Part shown: positions 5,990 to 63,224 of the stretch, piece after piece
How the letters are laid out: each line of letters begins with the position of its first letter
Numbering within the stretch: the first letter of the stretch is position 1
The notes under the pieces: model-generated
What the model was told of the DNA's origin: nothing
The model's input: only the letters and a program-made list of their open reading frames with translations
Databases searched by the model: none
Program-made: the position numbers and the translations under genes
DNA from: Dicyema japonicum
Lineage: Eukaryota; Animalia; Dicyemida
DNA length: 64,000 nucleotides
Direction: 5' to 3'
NCBI GenBank assembly: GCA_011109175.1
Contig: RDEW01000030.1
Span: 552,094 to 616,093, forward strand

Positions 5990-7500
5990 TTTTTAAGTTC
6001 CTAGGCTTTGACTCAAGTCCCCCCATAATAAAGTTTGTGAGGATTTGCAGATGCATACTTGTAGATAGGCATTTCTTAAATCCGTGCTGGATTCTTTAGG
6101 TAGATATAGGAAGCTCTTGTCCAAGACCATTTTCTCAAGAATTATTGACAATGCGCATAATAGGGATATTTGTCGATAAGAAGAGAACTCTATTGGTTTT
6201 CCAGGATAAGAAGAGAACTCTTTTGGTTTTCCAGGTTTCTTAACTGTGTGGATATGGGCCAACTTCCACATTGTTGGAATTGTGTTTCTTTTTATGGATA
6301 TGTTGCATATATGTTAGTGCTGAGTTCCCTGGGACCAAACTATTTGGTAACAATCATAGGAATTGTTATCTGGTCTGCTTAAGTAGGTTAGCTTTTGGGA
6401 TTTAATGGCATTTTCGACCTCCACAGGTGAGAATGATATATCATGACGACATCTTAGTTTTATCAAAGACAAGGGTGGACCCTCGTACTTTTTATGAGAT
6501 AAGTTGCTGTTCTTAGCGTAGAACTTGATCATTCTATCGGTTTCCTTATTGCTGAATTCAGGACTGTTTCTCTTTTGATTTTGAAGGGTTTTTCTCCATT
6601 TGTCCACTTTCTTTTTCTTAGAGATGTTCTTTATTTTTCTATCCAGCACTCGAATCCAATTATTGGGGATGGCATTGGATGCTTCTGAGTAGATTACGTT
6701 CATTCATAATCTTTTTTTGTTCAAAACATTTAATGTATGATTTGATTGATCTTTCTCTGATACTTTCATTGCCTGCTGGATCTTTCTGTTAACATGGGAA
6801 ACTGCATTATCAAGTGAATTGATGCGTAATGAATCGAAATCTACTAAGTTTATGTCAAAATATTGCGCAAAATCTTTCCAAATAACGGTACTGTTGTAAT
6901 CCAGAAAAATGTAAAACATCCAGAAGGAAACTCCTTTGGGCGGGAGGTGGTAAAAGGAATGTACATGTTTACAATTGTAATATTTCCTATGTTTGTTTGA
7001 ATGAAGATCCCAATTTATTCCACGGGCGATGGACGATCATAACGCGAAAACGTGTGACAGATCTCTCTCAATGACTCCTCTTCCACAGCCAAGCTGGCAA
7101 TCCTTTCTGATAACAATGTAACCCGGAAGTGTTGGAATGGAAGAAGAGAGGTCAGCTATGTCTTCTGTAGGAGGCACATGTCGACTTCACACTTCTTTAA
7201 AAAAGTTCTGAGCTCGATTATCTTCCCTCTCATTCCATTTATGTTGAGTTGAATGGTGGAGAAAGACTTCGCTAGTCCCGGATTAGGGTTGATGCCTCGA
7301 GAGATGATTAAGAGCGTTACTAACAGGTCAGATGAGTAATACAGAGAGAGCCTTCCAAAAAGACATTTTTCTTGGATTGGGATGAGCATATGGTCCTTTT
7401 TACTGTGTCTCTAATTCCACAGTCGCCTGCAGGAACGGAGAACCACATGACGCGCACTTATACAATCGATCTTCATGGAAAATGTCCAAGATATAAACGG
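5990..7500 (-). mobile_element. Degraded I-group/Ingi-Vingi-like LINE: 2A-like motif, APE, linker, RT N-terminus
   Basis: LLIISRGINPNPGL, QLNINGMRGK..LQKT (APE start) and KPGKP..SSYRQISLLCALS..LEKMV (RT start). A weak Cys-containing PHD-like remnant lies near 7400-7490. Confidence 0.75.
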
Positions 7501-7864: not shown

Positions 7865-9950
7865 CTAATTGATCCATGCGCCACTCGATTCGCATCTTCC
7901 AGTGACGAGACAGGCACGTCTGTGTTGGTTTGATTGGTTCAGAAGCCTCTCATATTTATCCTCGCAAATGGTCCTGTAACGGAATTGTTTCTAATAGTGT
8001 CCCTGATAGCATCCTGTTTATTTGTTTGGTGATAGCCAACACGAGCCGGACCCCAGAGTTGCCCGTGTTATGAGAAATGAGATCTTTGAGGTGACCCGGG
8101 ACGGAGCCCCATCTATACCATTTTCAGGTTTAAAGTGGGTCTTACCAAAAGCAAAAGTGGGTCTTACCAAAAGCAAAGTGGGTCTTACCAAAAGCAAAGT
8201 GGTACTTACCAAAAGCAAAGTGGTACTTACAAAAGCAAAGTGGAACTTACCAAAAGCAAATTGGAACTTACCAAAAGCAAATTGGTACTTACCATAAGCA
8301 AAGTGGTACTTGTAGGATATAGACGCGTAATATTTTATCAGTGTGTCTGGTTTTATGTAGAGTCGACTTTTCTCTCTGGGGTGGATCTTTGGTGTTTAGA
8401 TCCACATCCATACTCTCTGCATTGGGGGTTTTTGTAGAGAGCCTTCGATAGTCTCGTCCATCTATTTGCATTTTCTGTCTTTATGTTGTTGTCGATCTCT
8501 GTGTTCTGCTCTCGTATTTTCCTGATGTTCTTTTCTGTTTGGCGATTTTACCATCTTTAGATTATTTCGTTCTCTGATCAGATGTTTCGTCGTTGTGTTG
8601 AATGTACTTCTTTTTCGCAGCGTTTATAATGGAGTTGAACCATTTCACTAATTGTTCGACGGAGGGAAAAGTGAGGAAATTTAATAGTCCAATACAATTA
8701 TCGACGTATTCTTTGAATCCTCTCCAATTCGCAAGGCTGAGTATGTTATCGTTGGGTATTGTCCTTTTATCCGTGACCTCGTTTTGAACTCCAAAAATAT
8801 TGGATTGTGGTCACTCCTGGGGTCATACTTCACTGACCAGTCAATAAGAGGGGCCACTGATAAATATTACGCGTCTATATCCTACAAGTACTACTTTGCT
8901 TTTGGTAAGTACCACTTTGCTTTTGGTAAGTTCCACTTTGCTTTTGGTAAGTTCCACTTTGCTTTTGGTAAGTACCACTTTGCTTTTGGTAAGTACCACT
9001 TTGCTTTTGGTAAAACCACTTTAAACCTGAAATGGTATAGTCTTCCACTGCTGCTCGGGACGAAAGAGAGAATCCCATCTTTTACGTCCTCTTCAGAAAC
9101 AAGTAGATTGGGTAATTGTCCTGGGCAAGGAGTAATCTGATGGTCGTAGGGATTACTTGGATGTCGCTTAACAAGTGATGCGTAGGACTGTTCAGACGGC
9201 TCAATTATACATTATTGATCTGCAAGGATCCTCACGGCTGCATGGATGCCACCTTTGAAAATTTTTGACGGATCGCACTTTTTAATCTTTGAGTGTCCGA
9301 GATAGTCGATGCTGGCTTGTAGGTGACCTTTTCTGAGTCTGCCAATAGGTTCCTTGAGAAGAATGTGTGGACATTCTCCTTTACTAATGACGTAGGTAAT
9401 TTCTCTTCTTTCCCCCTCCTATGGGGTATGCATAGTGTGAATGGAGCGAATCAAAATAATCGTACCCAATCCTCAGAGTCGTCCGAAGAAACTGCCTTTT
9501 CAATAAACTCACCTAGGCAGTCTGCGACAGATATACGGGCAGTTTTGAGAATCCTGATTAGGAGTCTTCGTGTGTGTGTCAGGATTGAGATCAATTCAAG
9601 TATTTCCTGATGGTCTAGTGGAACATGTTCAGAAGGGTAGCTTAGAGAATAGTTTATCATATTGAGACAAGACCGACAGTCTCAATCGGAAATGGCAGCC
9701 AGGGCTCTTTTAGTCATTCCGGTACAGGACATGTGGAAGCCACACGAACAGGCTGTGCAATGGATCATCCGCTTTTTTTGTTCATTATGTTGCATTTTTT
9801 GCAGATCTCATCTTCTTTTGCAGGTTTCTGCATGTTCTTTTCTGATTTTCCATTCTTTTTCTTTTCTTTTCTCTTAGCACCACAAAGACCACAACGAGCA
9901 ATTGCGTAATCCCCAAATATTCCACAAAATCGGCCCACTTGTCAGCAAAA
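7865..9950 (-). mobile_element. CRE-type non-LTR retrotransposon with N-terminal PHD finger, internally deleted and interrupted at 8116-9037
   Basis: PHD-like CKKC..HCTACSCGFHMSC..DCRSC (9660-9830). ARISVADCL..W. GGIHAAVRIL..VSEEDVKDGILSFVPSSSGRL, then the insertion, then DGLRP.HLKDL. CESSGAWIN near 7870. Confidence 0.75.
8116..9037. mobile_element. Foldback-type non-autonomous element with long modular TIRs and TA target duplication
   Basis: Inverted repeats 8116-8343 and 8855-9037 with TACCATTT termini, holding 8 and 6 copies of a ~21-bp unit CTTACCAAAAGCAAAGTGGTA. TA at 8114-8115 and 9038-9039. The spacer is a minus-strand LINE APE-end/linker fragment (SDHNPIFL, LANWRGF). Confidence 0.85.
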
Positions 9951-40309: not shown

Positions 40310-42500
40310 TTAAACCGAAAAACTAAACTAAGTGATCCCGACGAATTGGATCAAGGCTCTCATCTTTGCTCGGTGTTGATCGCTTGAGCTTACACAAGTT
40401 CGTTGTGGATGACACTTCTTTTTGGCATTGTGTTTATTTTTGTTTTTTTCGATTAGTTTCTCCATGGGCGTCGGTGATTTAATGTTTTCCTGTATACCAT
40501 CTCTCGGTTAGTTTGAAGGCCCTTTTCTGGGTTTCGCAGATTTTCTGGATGTTCGTATAAGAGGTCAGTGGTCCCCATGAAGTAAACGCATATGAAATTC
40601 ATGGTTCGATGTACTGTGAGTAGAGCGTTTTAAGTATAGGGTGATGTCCAATTTTCCATAGACATGTTAGGCATTTCAGAAGGTTGATTTTCTTCTCACA
40701 TTTGTTCAGCACGTAAGTGACGTGTCTCGTAAAGTTTATGTACGTATCGAAAGTTAGACCCAATATTTTTTGCCATTTGCTGAACGGGAATGCTCTTCCC
40801 TCCGCAGTAACTTTTATTGACCTGTTCGACAATTTTTTGTCCGAGGTAAAGTTGTAACGATTTTTCGGTATTGATTGATATCCGATTTTCATTAAACCAC
40901 TGGAGTAGTCGATCCATGTGGTGTTGTATTCTTTCCGTGGCTGATTGGGTGTTCTGATCCTGTGAGGCTAAGACGATATTGTCTGCATAAGCCAGAAGCA
41001 GGTCGTCTTCTCCATACGGCGTCGGAATGTCAGCTGTAAATAAATTGAATAGTAATGGTGATACGCGAGCCCTGGGGTACTCCATTTGAAATAAACGGGA
41101 GACAGAATGAATGTTTCCAATGCACACTCTACCTCTTCCGTCCACTAAGGAAGTTTGTCAGCCAGCGTTTGAGGTTTTCAGGGATATCTGATTTGTAGAT
41201 TTTCCATGTTAGGGTCTTCCTCGGCACAGAGTCGAAAGCTTTGTGGACGTCTAGTAAGCATAACACAGTTTCCTGGTTGTCTTGGTTTGTACAGAAATCC
41301 AGAGCGAACAAAGTTAGTCAAGGATGTGAGGAAACTTGTTGTGGACCGATCCTTTTTGAAACCATGCAGGAACGGTTTATCGGGAGGGTCCTCTCAGTAT
41401 TTTTGCGAGGATAAGCTTTTCCAGAATTTTTGACATGGAGCATAAGAGAGAAATAGACATGAAGGAAGCTGGGTCTTCTTTCGGTTTTCCTGGCTTCAAA
41501 TGTTTGCAAGTGTCAATATCGTTGGGATTGAGTTATAATTAATCGATCAGTTGTAGATGTTGGTCAGGGTACCGATTCCCTCATTGCTTAGGTTTTTCAG
41601 AAGAATTGTGGGAATTCTGTCTGTACCATGTGAATATGTTACTTTTGTTTGGCTTAGGCATGCCATTACCTCCTTTACCGTGAAATAAGTTAATTGATCC
41701 CTTTTCGATTTTCTTAGCGGCGGTTTGGGTGGTCAGTCCTCATGTGGTTTTTTTAGAGATTTTCGCGTAGTATTTTATTAGGGCGTTTAGGTCCTTTTGG
41801 CTGAATTCGTCATTTCCGGTGTCCCTTCATCCACTTTCGAGATATTTCGAATAGTCTTCCAGAATTCGGATGTTGACTGGTTACGATTTAATGACGTAAG
41901 GACCATCTTCCATTTAGCTCTCTGTATTTTGAATTCATTGGCTTTTATTTCCTCGTTCAGCAGAACGATCTTTTCAGAAGAACGGATCCCTGCTTTTTTG
42001 AGACGGTTTCGTTCCTTGACCAGAGCCTTCCTTCCGTACTTTCTCGTGTAAACGACATATCTTTTAGGGACAGCCATTGTTCTAGCTTCCAGGATGACTT
42101 TGTTGACGTATGCAACCACTATATCAAGGGAGGTAAAGTTTTCCAGCTGTATATAAGCCAAACGTTGATCCGTAACTGATCGGAATAATTGTCAATTTGC
42201 AAGATTGTATATATGCATTTCTTCTTCCACTGGTAATTACGCTTTGATTTTTAGCAGAATAGGGTTATGGTCACTTCGGGTGTCGTGGATTACGGACCAA
42301 TTAATCGTTGTTGAAAGCTGTGGTGAACAGAGTGTGATATCTGGGGAGGTTGGATTGTCAGAGTTCCTTTGAGGTGTTCTTGTGTTTTTTGATGGGTCAT
42401 TGATGATTGTCAGATTGCCAGACTGCGACAACAGCAAATTTACTCTTGTATCTGCAGACTGATTTAACACTCAGAGAGGGTGTTCAAATCGCCGCATATC
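40310..42500 (-). mobile_element. Degraded I-group/Ingi-Vingi-like LINE (APE end, linker, RT, 3' tail)
   Basis: TSPDITL..WSV..RSDHNPI, LIKYYAKIS, DVHKAFDSV, LLAYADNIV, ILGLTFD; GGGATCACTTAGTTTAG tail. Confidence 0.85.
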
Positions 42501-58049: not shown

Positions 58050-58900
58050 TTGTAATCTTAAGAATTTTATCATTATGCCTTCTTTTATTAACTTCTTTAC
58101 AAAATTTCTTGGCGTCTTGTTTAGTGTCCCAATGTACTTCTAAAAACGTTGTGCCAGCCTTCAATGGAGTCATTTGTCCGAGGTAAGTCCTCATATAGAT
58201 TATCCAGATTTCCAATAATTAATTGGAAATCTTGGAATTAATCCATTTTCTTGATTTCCAATATAATTGATCAAGAAATATTGATATAATGGAGTTAGAA
58301 TCACAGGAAAATCTGATCTCGACACTATCCAATCAAAAGTGTTCTTTACAGTATGTGTAGGAATAAGGAGAGGCATTTCAACAGTTTTACAAATCTATCG
58401 GTAATTTTAAATCACATTTAACCTATTTACATCTTCATTATTTATGTCGTTGAAAATTCCTAATTCCAATATTTTTATTAATATTTTGTCCTAGATGGAA
58501 CATGAAGCAATTTATCCGTGCGTTTGGAAATGACTTTTGAAAAGAGTTTATTGCTCCTTTTTCAAAATCTGAGACAATAACTCTTGGTTCTAAATCCGGA
58601 ATGAGACGTTTAATTATTAGAAGCATTGTGTCATATTCAATTTCAGTTTTTTGATGTTAAAAGACAGAATATTATCGGAATTACATGGTGATTAATTATC
58701 ACCGATATTGTGAATAACTGCTTCCAAGGAAGAGGGCAGATAAAAAAGTCCCGTCAATAGACCATATTTTATGATTTTTTAATGGTGTCGTCATTTCAGA
58801 ATTAAAAAATAACCATATTTGACTCAACATCTGAAAAGTTAATCATTAATATACCAATAGTTTGCGAAAACTGTGTCCAAACTGATAGAATATTTGGTTG
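58050..58900 (-). mobile_element. MULE (Mutator-like) transposase pseudogene
   Basis: WSIDGTF, VIVSDFEKGAINSFQKSFP..CFMFHLGQ, LPRTNDSIEGWHN. Confidence 0.85.
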
Positions 58901-59576
58901 AACTGGTGAGGTGACGTGGTTCTGATTAATATGTCTATTTCACACATGACTAATGATCTTTCCATCACGTCACAACGCGTCATTCAACGTCCGTGGATTT
59001 AAAAAAAAAAAACATAAAAGGAAAGGATTTAATAAATGACTTAGCATCATACAAAGTCACGTTTTATCTTGTTTTTTGAAAAATCGAGGAGAGCAGGATC
59101 AAGATTGCCCTACACAAAAGCTCGACGAGAAGCTAGATGAAGATGAAAATTTGTTAGTAATGTCGATAAGAGATGCAGCATAAAAAAGGATGGAAAACTA
59201 CCTGAAAAAAGATGTCATCATTGACTCGTATGTTGCAGCACAAAATAAACGATAAGAGGGGTCTGAGAGCGCAGAGAAGAGTCCAAGCGTTTGCAGGACA
59301 TTTGACATGAGGCCAAATAACTCCCTCTTTAATTTTTTCTTGCTAATGAAGTTGTTAAAGTTAATGTTAAAGCCTCGCTTGTTTTACTGTCCGAGCGACA
59401 GTAATATAATGGTTTGTTAAGTTCTGATACTTAATGGGTCGTATTTAACCGTCTCAACCGGTAATCGTTACTTTCGGTCATACGGTTAAACGGCTTTAAC
59501 GGTTAAATCGATTTTACGGATCGTTTTCAACCTGGAGTCGTTGTCAACCGGTCACAATAATTAAAAATTAAAATTC

Positions 59577-59621
59577 CAGCGCCCTCCTAATATGCTCCAT
59601 CGCCCCCTTTAAGAACCACTG
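59577..59621 (+). mobile_element. hAT right end
   Basis: AGCGCCCTCCTAATATGCTCCATCGCCCCCTTTAAGAACCACTG followed by CTCTATCC. Confidence 0.6.
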
Positions 59622-59719
59622 CTCTATCCCATCCTGCTAGAGCCTGCTGGGATCACGTGATTAGTTAGTTTGTGTAACCGTGGTCTCTGGTGTTATTATT
59701 ATTGAAGTTATCTAATATA

Positions 59720-60860
59720 TGACCGATTTTGAAACCAGGACGGCCTAAAGACACACCAGCTTCTTACAAACCGATGTATCTTCTGTGTGCCTCTTCAAAA
59801 ATTATAGAAAAACTCATTCTCGGTCAGATTAAACCTTACCTTCCCGAAGTATCCTTCCAGCATGGAATTAAGAAGGATCACTATAAAACTACTCACCTTA
59901 CATGTTTAACAAAATTCATCAATGAGGGACTACAATGTAAACCTTGGCATCAAAAGACCCTAGTGTGCTCCATTGACGTACAAAAGGTTTGTGACTAGAT
60001 TCAGAGGAAATTACTCACCAGGAAGATCTTACTCACTGCATTCTAAACAATTTGAAAATTTACATTGCAAAATTCCTCAACGGACGAAGAGGAAGGGTAC
60101 TTGCACGTTCCACGTATTGATCCCTATTGTCATCCATTCTCTTCAACCTCTTTATGAGCGATATGCAGCGATAACACTCTGGTCCTCGCTTATGCTGACG
60201 ACATAATTGTAGTAACAAGATACCAGTGTGTTTACACAAAATTTACTGGACAGCCTAAGCAGTTTGCCTATGAGGAACACATTATATACAAGCCCTGAAA
60301 AGTCTAGCACAATGATTTTACTTCAAAAAGAAGACTAACAAACTCGGCACCTTTCTCTACCCTTAATGGAATGTCAATCCCCTCCAGTAACTTCATCAAA
60401 ATACTTATGACTTTCAGCAAGCATGTTAGCAACGTCATTTCCTCCTCCCAAAAAACTAAACTCTAAAACAATTCTTAGATACTACAAAGATTGTTTCTAC
60501 TCAACGTTACACTACCTTTATATGCAATACATTCAACCGACAATTGTTAGGTATGGGGCACAAACCTGTCTATACGAACCTAAAGAAAATTAATGTCTTT
60601 CAAGCGACAGTCATGTGGGCCCTACAAAGGTTCTCCTCAAGATTAATGCCAACTCCGTTCGAGGAACTTGTGAGGGGAACGGGAACCCGACTGGCATCTC
60701 CGAAATCCATTAGTGTCCCGTAAATACAAAAAGTGCGTCGGTTCTCGAGACAAACACCATGAAAGGATGAGGCTGATGCTAAAGGAGGCCGGTATCTCCT
60801 GACGGCCACATATCTTTTTAATATGTCGGTGATTCTTGGTTTTAAATAAATAATTATTGC
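59720..60860 (+). mobile_element. Degraded I-group/Ingi-Vingi-like LINE (RT to tail)
   Basis: KPGRPKDTPASYKP..IIEKLIL..FQHG..IDVQK, AYADDII; tail GGTGATTCTTGGTTTTAAATAAATAA. Confidence 0.75.
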
Positions 60861-61615
60861 AGTGTCAAAGTGCATGCATCTACGATATTTTTGGTGGATG
60901 AGTGTTGCAGTCATCAGTAAATATTTCAACAAATCGTCTACTAGGACTCACTCAAAGCAAAAAAGATAAAAGAAGTAAAGAATATTGCTTGGACCCCTTC
61001 TTAATTAGTTTTTATAACTGTCTTACTCTAATAAAGTGTGTGTCCTGCCTATGCAGCATTGTGGCTCTCGTAAAAAGTGTTTTTGTTTTTTTTAATGCGA
61101 ATCATTCTGGCCGGCATCCAAAAAGAATAACTTTCTTATTTACTCTACTTTCAGATAAGGATGGACGAGATGCTTAGAATTGACTGGTCTTAATCAGACC
61201 GTGGGATCAATCTATACCTTAATTCGATATTAATTAACTCTTAACTTCTTTCCGGTATATTCGGGGCTATTAAACATAGAAATTCTGTCAATTTGGTGAA
61301 GGTTCCATTAATCTAAAATGTTTATGTTGAAGAAAACGCCGTCATCAGTGTTTCATCACTGCAGAACTGGATTGTCTTATGGACTCAGATAATAGAAGAG
61401 AATAAAAACGAGAAGTCAAGAACATTTACAATGTCTAGGATTAATAAGTAGTACTATTCTTTTAAAATAGAGTATGAGTTCTGCATAGAGATTTAAGAAA
61501 TGAAACCATTAGATTTTTTTGCCGAAATGGCTGTTTTTTTAATATAAAAAATTTAATAATTAATATTCACTGCCATGTGCTTTGTAATTGTAAGATATTA
61601 TATTTAATATAAACT

Positions 61616-61687
61616 GGGGATGTAGTCTAACGGTATGACGTCTGCTTTGCATGCTGAAGGTTCCGGGTTCGATTCCTGGCGTCTCCA
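61616..61687 (+). tRNA. trnA-UGC: tRNA-Ala (anticodon TGC)
   Basis: Acceptor stem GGGGATG/CGTCTCC, discriminator A, anticodon TGC at 61648-61650, T arm CCGGG-TTCGATT-CCTGG. There are T-T mismatches in the D and anticodon stems. Confidence 0.88.
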
Positions 61688-61693
61688 TTTTTT
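61688..61693 (+). terminator. Pol III terminator (T6)
   Basis: TTTTTT immediately follows the tRNA 3' end. Confidence 0.75.
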
Positions 61694-61799
61694 CATTATA
61701 GAGTTATTATTTTTTATATTTTTTTGTGACTTCTCTGCAATGAAGGAAGAAAAGAAGATGAAGGGATACCGAAAACTACTAAAAGATTAAAAAAATTAG

Positions 61800-62035
61800 C
61801 GTGTTAGCTGCGTAGCGCCATGTGACTAGTTGTCATAATTTATTTTCCTTCCTTCGATGGCGTCATATGATCCACCTTACTAAGGAGACGCCCAATGCCT
61901 GGCCGGCATCACGAGGATCCAACTATTCCTTCCTCGGGGACAAATTCGTTACCTGAGACAAGTTCTTCAACGCTGGAGCGGCTAAGGGCCAAGGAGTTAG
62001 TTAGTTTGGTTACCCTTGGTTTTTGGAATAAATTT
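61800..62035 (+). repeat. Family A-related short element with structured head and a different body
   Basis: AGCTGCGTAGCGCCATGTG start and GGCGTC..GATCCACC..GAGACGCCCAATGCCTGGCCGGCAT..GGATC module; GTTAGTTAGTTTGG..AATAAA tail. Confidence 0.65.
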
Positions 62036-63224
62036 AATTTTTAATTAACAAAAGAACAGTGGATGTACTACCTCACATGCTAAATGTGAGATCGGAGGAG
62101 TGCGCATTTTCCGGTCATTGAAACGTAAGGAAATATGACCTGTAATGTCGTCTTGCGGAAGATTTTTTTATTTCGGGTTTGTGAGAATGTCGAAACTGAC
62201 CGTGGGATCTCTTTACAAATGGGACTGCGTTTTGTATCGATGTTGATCCCATTCGGAACCTCCAATTTGTTGAAATAAATCATTCCCCATATTCTGGAAA
62301 CATCAAACCCTTTTTGCTAGGCTAATCGGAGAGTCTGAAAGTTAGAGATTCCACTAAAGATACGGAATACCTCACCTCATTAATCGATAAAGCCATCAGT
62401 ATCAACGACCTTTTTGTGAAAGTGTCGATTGGATGTCCGTTTGGCTTCACTATTTTCAGCGATGGATGAGAAGAGGCCCTCACCATGATGTAATAACTGC
62501 CGGCTTACGGACATATAGCTGCTGCTCTCTGCAAGAAGAGATGTCTTTGTTGTGCTGGAGAACATGATCTTGCCAGATGTGAGGGCATACCTGGATCGAA
62601 GATTGACTGCATAAACTCTGGTCAACCAAACATTGAGCAAGGTACGGAGGATATCCAATTGCTAAAACAGCTAAACTAATTTTGCGAAACAATTAAACAA
62701 AGTCTATCCCAAAGAAGGCCTTGGCAAGTCATGTTCCAACGAAGACCGTGTCACCGGTAACTAACAATCTTGGCCTGCAAAATCAGCTTCGGTTGAAATT
62801 ATGCAGAAGTACCAGAGAACTTTAGGAGGCCTGTCATTTAACCTCCCTGAGAGAGTGTCTAACGAGTTGAAAGAGGTAATATCCCGACTGAAGGAGTCAT
62901 GTTCAATAGCGAAAGAAAGTAGTGACCCTGGCTATGGAGGGACCAGGCTGGCGAAATGTTTGAATATATGTTTAAGGATGTTTTTTTCGTGTCCAAAATT
63001 GACTCCAGATACAACACGGAGAGTTAAGTTTTCATCAGGACTTTAGGATGATATGGTCCACGTGGGACGATAAAGAAAGTGGTTATTAATGATCCCAAGT
63101 ATTTTTGCAGTTTTTGTCACAGGGAGAACATTTCCAGATATCTTCATTTCAGGTTGAGCGTTAAACAGTCGACGATCAGAAGTAAAACTGTAAAGTAATT
63201 TATTTAATTAAGGTTCCGCTTGTG

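Follow-up and report, generated by a model that had tools for sequence, protein, structure and literature searches.

A non-autonomous IS630/Tc1-type transposon with tandem-array arms and a captured LINE fragment in Dicyema japonicum

The 64,000-nt stretch of Dicyema japonicum DNA that was analyzed here (the window; contig RDEW01000030.1) contains, at positions 8116-9037, a 922-bp element that is flanked by TA dinucleotides, has arms built of 21-bp tandem repeats, and carries a fragment of a long interspersed nuclear element (LINE) in its center. Comparison with related copies in the genome showed that it belongs to a non-autonomous subfamily of an IS630/Tc1-type (DD35E) transposon, of which intact, transposase-encoding copies were found in the same assembly. 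Taken as a whole, the evidence makes it likely that the LINE fragment was captured by a member of this family during gap repair, and that the resulting element was then spread by the transposase of the family. The window lies on contig C224 of an assembly of 67.5 Mb in 377 contigs, and all genome-wide counts given below refer to that assembly.

Architecture of the element and its target site

The element and its immediate borders consist of the following parts (window coordinates, strand, description).

8116-9037: complete non-autonomous element of 922 bp; first bases TACCATTT, last bases AAATGGTA
8114-8115: TA target-site duplication on the left; the C of the CTAG target is supplied by the host base at 8113
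8116-8131, plus strand: left terminus, compared with 90 genomic termini
8132-8311, plus strand: left arm, tandem array of the 21-bp unit with 8.6 copies (Tandem Repeats Finder, 93% matches)
8312-8856, minus strand (the LINE sense is the minus strand of the window): captured internal LINE fragment, 545 bp, by BLAST to LINE copies
8312-8341, plus strand: initial 30 bp of the LINE fragment, repeated in inverted orientation beside the right arm (inverted-pair and LINE comparison)
8857-8885, minus strand: inverted duplicate of 8312-8341, 29 nt with one A missing, between the end of the LINE homology and the right array
8886-9022, minus strand: right arm, tandem array of the 21-bp unit with 6.6 copies, in the opposite orientation to the left arm (Tandem Repeats Finder, 95% matches)
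9023-9037, minus strand: right terminus
9038-9039: TA target-site duplication on the right; the G of the CTAG target is supplied by the host base at 9040

The two termini, 8116-8131 and 9023-9037, are inverted copies of one another, and the left terminus of the window copy contains one additional T compared with the family consensus TACCATTTCAGGTTT. The best inverted pair joins 8230-8335 with 8862-8967 at 96% complementarity. Because the first 30 bp of the LINE fragment are present in inverted orientation beside the right arm, the inverted repeat extends 30 bp beyond the arrays, and the arms including this extension comprise 226 bp (8116-8341) and 181 bp (8857-9037). Folded as single-stranded DNA, the 922-bp element forms a single long hairpin with -231 kcal/mol, compared with -83 +/- 6 kcal/mol for shuffled sequences (z = -24.9).

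The 21-bp units are presumably repeated binding sites of the transposase. Unit variants follow one another in a fixed order from the outside to the inside, mirrored on both arms, with the central trinucleotides GTC, TAC, and AAC, followed in cargo copies by a second TAC; this was seen in the window arrays and in the arms of the autonomous form (loci L017 and L020). The mirrored order suggests that the arms are kept alike by arm-to-arm copying.

The target site was determined by comparison with empty sites. At the site of the window insertion, an uninterrupted C-TA-G was present in 11 paralogues of the retroelement into which the element has inserted, which identifies TA as the duplicated sequence and assigns a further TA at either end to the element itself. 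For a cargo copy on contig C46, which resides in another repeat family, an empty site was likewise available; here, C-TA-G was found in 9 paralogues. The alternative of a 4-bp TATA duplication was ruled out, as all 20 paralogous empty sites at the two loci read CTAG and not CTATAG.

Two parts of the host retroelement adjoin the insertion.

7868-8113, minus strand: part of the host retroelement that is downstream of the insertion in host sense, by BLAST to its paralogue L062
9040-9897, minus strand: upstream part of the host retroelement with remnants of an open reading frame (ORF) for a PHD finger and the start of the reverse transcriptase ORF, by BLAST to L062 (88% identity)

Intact host paralogues encode an RVT_1 reverse transcriptase, in which the peptide SSGGLDGLRP spans the target CTAG. 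Pfam analysis of the L062 ORFs revealed RVT_1 and, in the upstream ORF, a PHD finger; an APE (endonuclease) domain was not seen in the 3.1-kb paralogue locus, which stops short of the C-terminal region. Elements of the CRE clade have a restriction-like endonuclease behind the reverse transcriptase and lack an APE domain. The layout seen fits the assignment of the host to the CRE retrotransposons without proving it. The host copy in the window is decayed and has, in addition, lost about 1.17 kb (positions 328-1500 of L062, most of the reverse transcriptase) at a single breakpoint, 7981/7982, 130 bp from the insertion.

These results bear out much of what an initial annotation, made from the letters of the window alone, had proposed. 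The 922-bp element with array arms is located where it had been placed, the range 8114-9039 given there including one TA on each side; likewise, the arm lengths of 228 and 183 bp correspond to 226 and 181 bp plus the flanking TA. The duplication is of the Tc1/mariner type, as had been suspected, and the ambiguity between TA and TATA that had been admitted is settled in favor of TA. Removal of the element and one TA does restore the host reading, in the form SSGGLDGLRP of the paralogues, and with RVT_1 in these paralogues the proposed nesting in a reverse transcriptase-encoding retroelement stands.

The left arm was used to search the genome and yielded 51 matches, many of them as inverted pairs that are 0.5-1.9 kb apart. 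The terminal motif of 25 nt occurred 90 times, compared with 0 occurrences of a reversed control pattern, and the 90 termini could be combined into about 28 pairs with a spacing of 0.46-1.9 kb. All of the loci that were read, at least 24, had the same ends, with C-TA-TA bordering the left one and TA-TA-G the right one. The possibility that the arrays are unpaired minisatellites is thus ruled out by the approximately 28 pairings, and the genome-wide check that the initial annotation had recommended revealed paired arms and TA duplications at other loci as well as a transposase in an autonomous form. Across copies, the arm lengths differ in whole 21-bp units, from about 1.6 to 9.4 units.

Of 46 family ends, 45 had a C as the host base adjoining the TA, and every one of the 46 had an A or T one position further outward, which gives the palindrome WCTAGW as the target. 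Among the 90 genomic termini, a C adjoined the TA in 86. Two further observations concern the distribution of the family. A cargo copy (L005, on C46) and an autonomous copy (L027, on C35 near position 833667) occupy one and the same CTAG in separate copies of a dispersed repeat, which indicates either a very narrow target choice or a preferred landing site in this repeat. On contig C224 itself, outside of the window (58371-62264), two slightly diverged family termini face each other at a distance of 3.9 kb; the two could delimit a family member of greater length, or one into which another sequence has inserted.

An assembly artefact, i.e., a mis-joined unpaired minisatellite, has next to no probability. 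Inverted tandem arrays are indeed difficult to assemble, but the same architecture and junctions are found on ten other contigs with distinct flanks, and clean empty sites exist. The recurrence of the junctions on these contigs argues decisively against an error of assembly.

An autonomous partner with a DD35E transposase

The superfamily of the element was established via an autonomous relative. A 1890-bp element, covered by loci L017 and L020, has the same termini and the same 21-bp arrays as the window element; only the termini and arrays are common to the two, with 92-94% identity. On the minus strand, at L017:1708-2790, it contains an ORF of 361 amino acids with a Pfam DDE_3 match (4.5e-21), and this ORF scored 113.5 bits with the NCBIfam model of the IS630 family transposase, for which the cut-off is 100. 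Alignment to the catalytic core of Sleeping Beauty (SB100X) placed 35 residues between the second D (VVDNAP) and the E (NPIENIW), that is, a DD35E triad.

Together, these findings show that the window element represents a non-autonomous subfamily of an IS630/Tc1-type transposon. With regard to the IS630/Tc1/mariner superfamily, a TA duplication was found at two empty sites, and the termini are held in common with an element that encodes a DDE/D transposase. With regard to the IS630-like subgroup, the transposase has the DD35E spacing and the target is preferentially a TA within CTAG.

The 361-amino-acid ORF was found at four loci with different flanks, and not a single nucleotide difference was present over 1083 nt. 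The family has therefore moved very recently and, judging from these sequences, is probably still active. Elements of the window type would be mobilized in trans by the family transposase, a view to which two results contribute: at least 11 cargo copies are inserted at distinct TA sites, and the four transposase genes are intact and identical.

Between the start codon of the transposase gene and the right arm, locus L020 contains a second, degenerate 21-bp array (L020:1115-1403; 13.8 copies, 74% matches), the unit of which has the core CACTTTTGC in common with the arm unit. It may be an older, decayed part of an arm or a promoter region.

The captured LINE fragment and its mirrored junction

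The central 545 bp of the window element (8312-8856) match about 30 dispersed copies of one family of APE-type LINEs. BLAST comparison with 20 of these copies resulted in 87-88% identity when gaps were counted and 93-95% when they were not. In copy L049 of this donor family, an open frame of 593 amino acids is visible, with the Pfam domain Exo_endo_phos (APE) at residues 48-262 and RVT_1 from residue 525 onwards. Relative to the L049 frame, the capture comprises approximately residues 242-436, i.e., the end of the APE domain and the linker between APE and reverse transcriptase, as had been recognized initially. The LINE-like peptide near 41760-41790, which had been offered for comparison, belongs to a different LINE that has no nucleotide match to the core, and at the nucleotide level nothing else in the window matched the core either.

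Just upstream of the APE domain, the N-terminus of the donor LINE ORF (L049:1003-2784, minus strand) contains the motif DVEANPGP. We take this to be the signature of a 2A-type ribosome-skipping peptide, as is known from some APE-type LINEs. The 5' end of a different LINE at 7156-7389 of the window (minus strand) has a decayed version, NPNPG, at the same relative place.

Both junctions of the window copy recur in ten element copies on other contigs with distinct flanks. Identity among the cargo copies is 96-100%, as against 93-95% with the LINE, and 15 substitutions shared by them are fixed compared with six sampled LINE copies. Since the junctions are identical in all 11 cargo copies, the sequence comparison demonstrates that the LINE piece was captured only once and then spread. 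Two cargo copies on C346 and C374 (L039 and L040) have the same flanking sequence in opposite orientation; they probably represent haplotigs of one locus, or else a segmental duplication of recent date, and should enter the count only once.

The copies differ in their internal deletions. In four of them (on C312, C356, C346, and C374), 35 bp of LINE sequence are kept that are lost in the window copy and five others, and the window copy belongs to this younger, 35-bp-deleted subgroup. A 530-bp copy on C301 has retained both junctions, while the middle of the LINE piece is gone. From these states, the order of events can be derived as capture, spread, 35-bp deletion, further spread, and larger deletion. 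The cargo copies have no coding capacity, and the approximately 11 that were found have sizes of 835-1012 bp, with one of 530 bp. For comparison, MITEs (miniature inverted-repeat transposable elements) usually measure less than 800 bp, lack coding capacity, and are present in high copy number.

The census covered 20 complete copies, of which 11 contain the LINE piece; the remaining 9 are the autonomous form or plain internal-deletion derivatives and contain no foreign DNA. The derivatives apparently have individual breakpoints each. A second type of cargo was also sought in three further short pairs (L091-L093; 465, 930, and 949 bp), but all three turned out to be internal-deletion derivatives of the autonomous element. 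Accordingly, the expectation of different cargo at other loci was not borne out, a single type being present among the 20 complete copies, and cargo carrying is not a property of the family as had been assumed: one LINE piece with identical junctions is found in 11 of the 20, and no foreign DNA in the other 9.

The same census bears on the proposal, put forward at the outset, of an undescribed cargo-carrying foldback family of the FB/Galileo type, one that would habitually capture fragments of the host or of other transposable elements. Long arms built of arrays, a strong hairpin potential, and one captured fragment are all features that such a family would have. The duplication, however, is 2 bp long, the partner transposase, which is intact in the same genome, is of the IS630/Tc1 type with a DD35E triad and is neither P- nor Mutator-like, and only one type of cargo occurs among the 20 complete copies. 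We therefore regard a distinct foldback family of this kind as extremely improbable.

The anatomy of the junctions is informative about how the LINE piece entered the element. On the left side, the array halts in the phase ACTT and is followed by the LINE sequence; on the right side, the array has the same ACTT phase before the mirrored 30 bp. The segment 8857-8885 matches the same LINE positions as 8312-8341 in reversed orientation, this junction is identical in 10 copies, and both 30-bp copies have the same difference from the sampled LINE copies. Thus, the sequences demonstrate an inverted duplication by which the second arm received the opening 30 bp of the LINE piece, as had also been noticed initially. 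Because the 30 bp are mirrored, the array phase is the same, and the difference is shared, it was the junction between array and LINE itself of which the other arm received a copy. An overlap of 2 nt (CA) is present where the inverted piece meets the end of the LINE homology, and one of 1 nt where array and LINE meet.

The most likely origin that can be proposed from these junctions is abortive gap repair in which the template was switched. The same scheme has been put forward for the MITE Goblin, which is derived from Ozma, and the capture of filler DNA in such repair has also been described (PMC3814204). In the case of the window element, a family element would have excised, and the double-strand gap would have been repaired from a copy that still held the element. 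A strand copying inward through one array would have abandoned it for a LINE template. From the opposite end, a second strand with the same array sequence could then have annealed to this product and been extended by 30 bp over the array-LINE junction, and the two strands would have been joined at the 2-nt microhomology. In this way, the transposase gene and all other internal sequence would have been replaced by 545 bp from the middle of the LINE in one ancestor. The family transposase would then have moved the new element in trans to at least 10 more WCTAGW sites, duplicating the central TA each time. The 35-bp deletion, the larger deletion leading to the 530-bp form, and the gain or loss of whole 21-bp units arose in the course of this spread.

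Two other routes to the present structure were considered. In the first, which we consider improbable, two family elements, or an element and a solo end, were situated near each other in a LINE copy, the outermost ends were used for transposition, and the inner halves were deleted later. Such a composite origin would be in accord with the frequent insertion of family elements into repeats, where they can use the same CTAG in two copies of one repeat, and with the existence of nested and clustered ends, e.g., on contigs C157 and C333. However, what borders on the LINE piece is the inner end of each array and not the terminus of an element, so that at least two extra deletions would be required, and independent deletions would not be expected to result in the same phase of the 21-bp unit and the mirrored 30 bp at both junctions.

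The second route, nested retrotransposition, is very improbable; here, target-primed reverse transcription would have placed a LINE copy inside a family element, and deletions would have shortened this copy afterwards. The captured fragment is internal (about residues 242-436 of the L049 frame) and lacks the 3' end that every target-primed insertion carries; for this reason, it is no ordinary LINE insertion. Furthermore, neither a duplication nor an A-rich tail is present at its borders, and no element sequence survives beyond the arms. Each of these two routes needs more steps, and neither explains the mirrored junction.

Several points nevertheless weigh against gap-repair capture followed by spread through the family transposase. 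The pathway of origin is read from the anatomy of the junctions, and the microhomologies there are short (1-2 nt). The donor LINE is known at the level of the family. About 8 further pairs, including the 3.9-kb pair on C224, exist besides the 20 complete copies of the census, and a second type of cargo could be present among them. Finally, the window copy is altered at both ends, by the extra T in its left terminus and by a changed outermost unit on the right; because of these small changes it may have lost its mobility and may no longer be able to move.

Significance and comparison with known systems

The family joins three themes that are usually separate, namely, an IS630-type transposase with a strict CTAG target in an animal, foldback ends made of tandem arrays, and DNA capture in gap repair. 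The copies record a sequence of events that begins with capture and leads via inverted duplication of the junction, spread, 35-bp deletion, and further spread to the larger deletion. As identical intact transposase genes remain, the family could be used to test whether repeated binding units aid or hinder transposition, and how arms lengthen. This combination of a readable history of arm extension with an intact partner for experiments is what makes the system most useful. For genome annotation, hairpin elements of 0.5-1.0 kb of this kind should be classified as non-autonomous TcMar/IS630 elements and not as LINE fragments, minisatellites, or FB elements.

Two wider readings may be mentioned. 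It is conceivable, though we would put it forward only tentatively, that the family represents a currently active, undescribed animal lineage of IS630-like transposons in which variable arrays of 21-bp binding units replace short repeats, and in which template switching lengthens the arms into captured DNA. If so, it would be a living model for the origin and growth of foldback-type ends. With still less weight, one might suppose that the LINE piece, being part of a hairpin-prone element, gives rise to antisense or hairpin RNA directed at the donor LINE; such RNA could explain why only the LINE-filled derivative multiplied.

In the literature, Tc1/IS630 ends built of head-to-tail arrays of one short unit were not found in a search of incomplete coverage, which is weak evidence, and nothing relevant was found on dicyemid transposons. 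The closest match to the transposase and target is IS630 of Shigella sonnei. As far as the citing article reports it, IS630 inserts into the TA of CTAG with duplication of the TA (Tenzen and Ohtsubo 1991, cited in PMC2170065). DD35E is the classical IS630 spacing, and intact copies of the IS630-type element IS630-NC1 have TATA at both ends when the duplication is included (PMC11544213). The family described here thus resembles IS630 in its match to the transposase model and the DD35E triad, in the CTAG target with TA duplication, and in the TATA ends. In contrast to the short, simple inverted repeats of IS630, each of its ends consists of a 16-bp terminus and up to about 11 tandem 21-bp units; moreover, the host is an animal and not a bacterium, and the window copy lacks a transposase gene and contains a LINE piece.

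The MITE Goblin of Aedes aegypti, which stems from the Tc1/mariner element Ozma, is likewise non-autonomous and has inverted repeats that were lengthened by an inverted subterminal duplication; the lengthening was attributed to abortive gap repair, with template switching and joining at microhomologies (PMC3814204). The duplicated sequence is Goblin's own, whereas in the window element the 30 bp stem from captured LINE DNA and the arms are tandem arrays.

Tc4 of Caenorhabditis elegans has the target CTNAG, of which the central TNA is duplicated (PMC11071193). Like the present family, it is a fold-back member of Tc1/mariner with a palindromic target, but it is a DDD element with a 3-bp duplication. 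Tc5 of the same species is presumably a comparable system and is grouped here with Tc4. To our knowledge, the long arms of Tc4 have not been described as arrays of one short unit.

FB of Drosophila, Galileo (P superfamily), and Tetris and Tm1 (Mutator/Foldback) have long, internally repetitive arms, many non-coding copies, and hairpin potential in common with the elements studied here, the ends of which would work in a similar way. The target-site duplications of these four are 7-9 bp long. The long inverted arms of tandem repeats that characterize Foldback elements are present in the window element; in place of a duplication of 7-9 bp and a partner of the P or Mutator type, a duplication of 2 bp and an IS630/Tc1 partner were found. 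Different fragments in different members, the mark of Pack-type elements, were not observed among the 20 complete copies. In Galileo, the DNA-binding domain of the transposase binds to sites inside the arm repeats, and the Tc1-like elements Sleeping Beauty, Bari, and Paris, which have ends of the inverted repeat-direct repeat (IR-DR) type, carry repeated sites for transposase binding within inverted repeats of about 200-250 bp (PMC3688188). In these three elements, each arm contains two sites separated by an unrelated spacer, whereas the arms of the Dicyema family are head-to-tail arrays of up to about 11 units, the number of which varies from copy to copy. The ends of this family resemble an exaggerated form of the two-site IR-DR ends of Sleeping Beauty or Bari.

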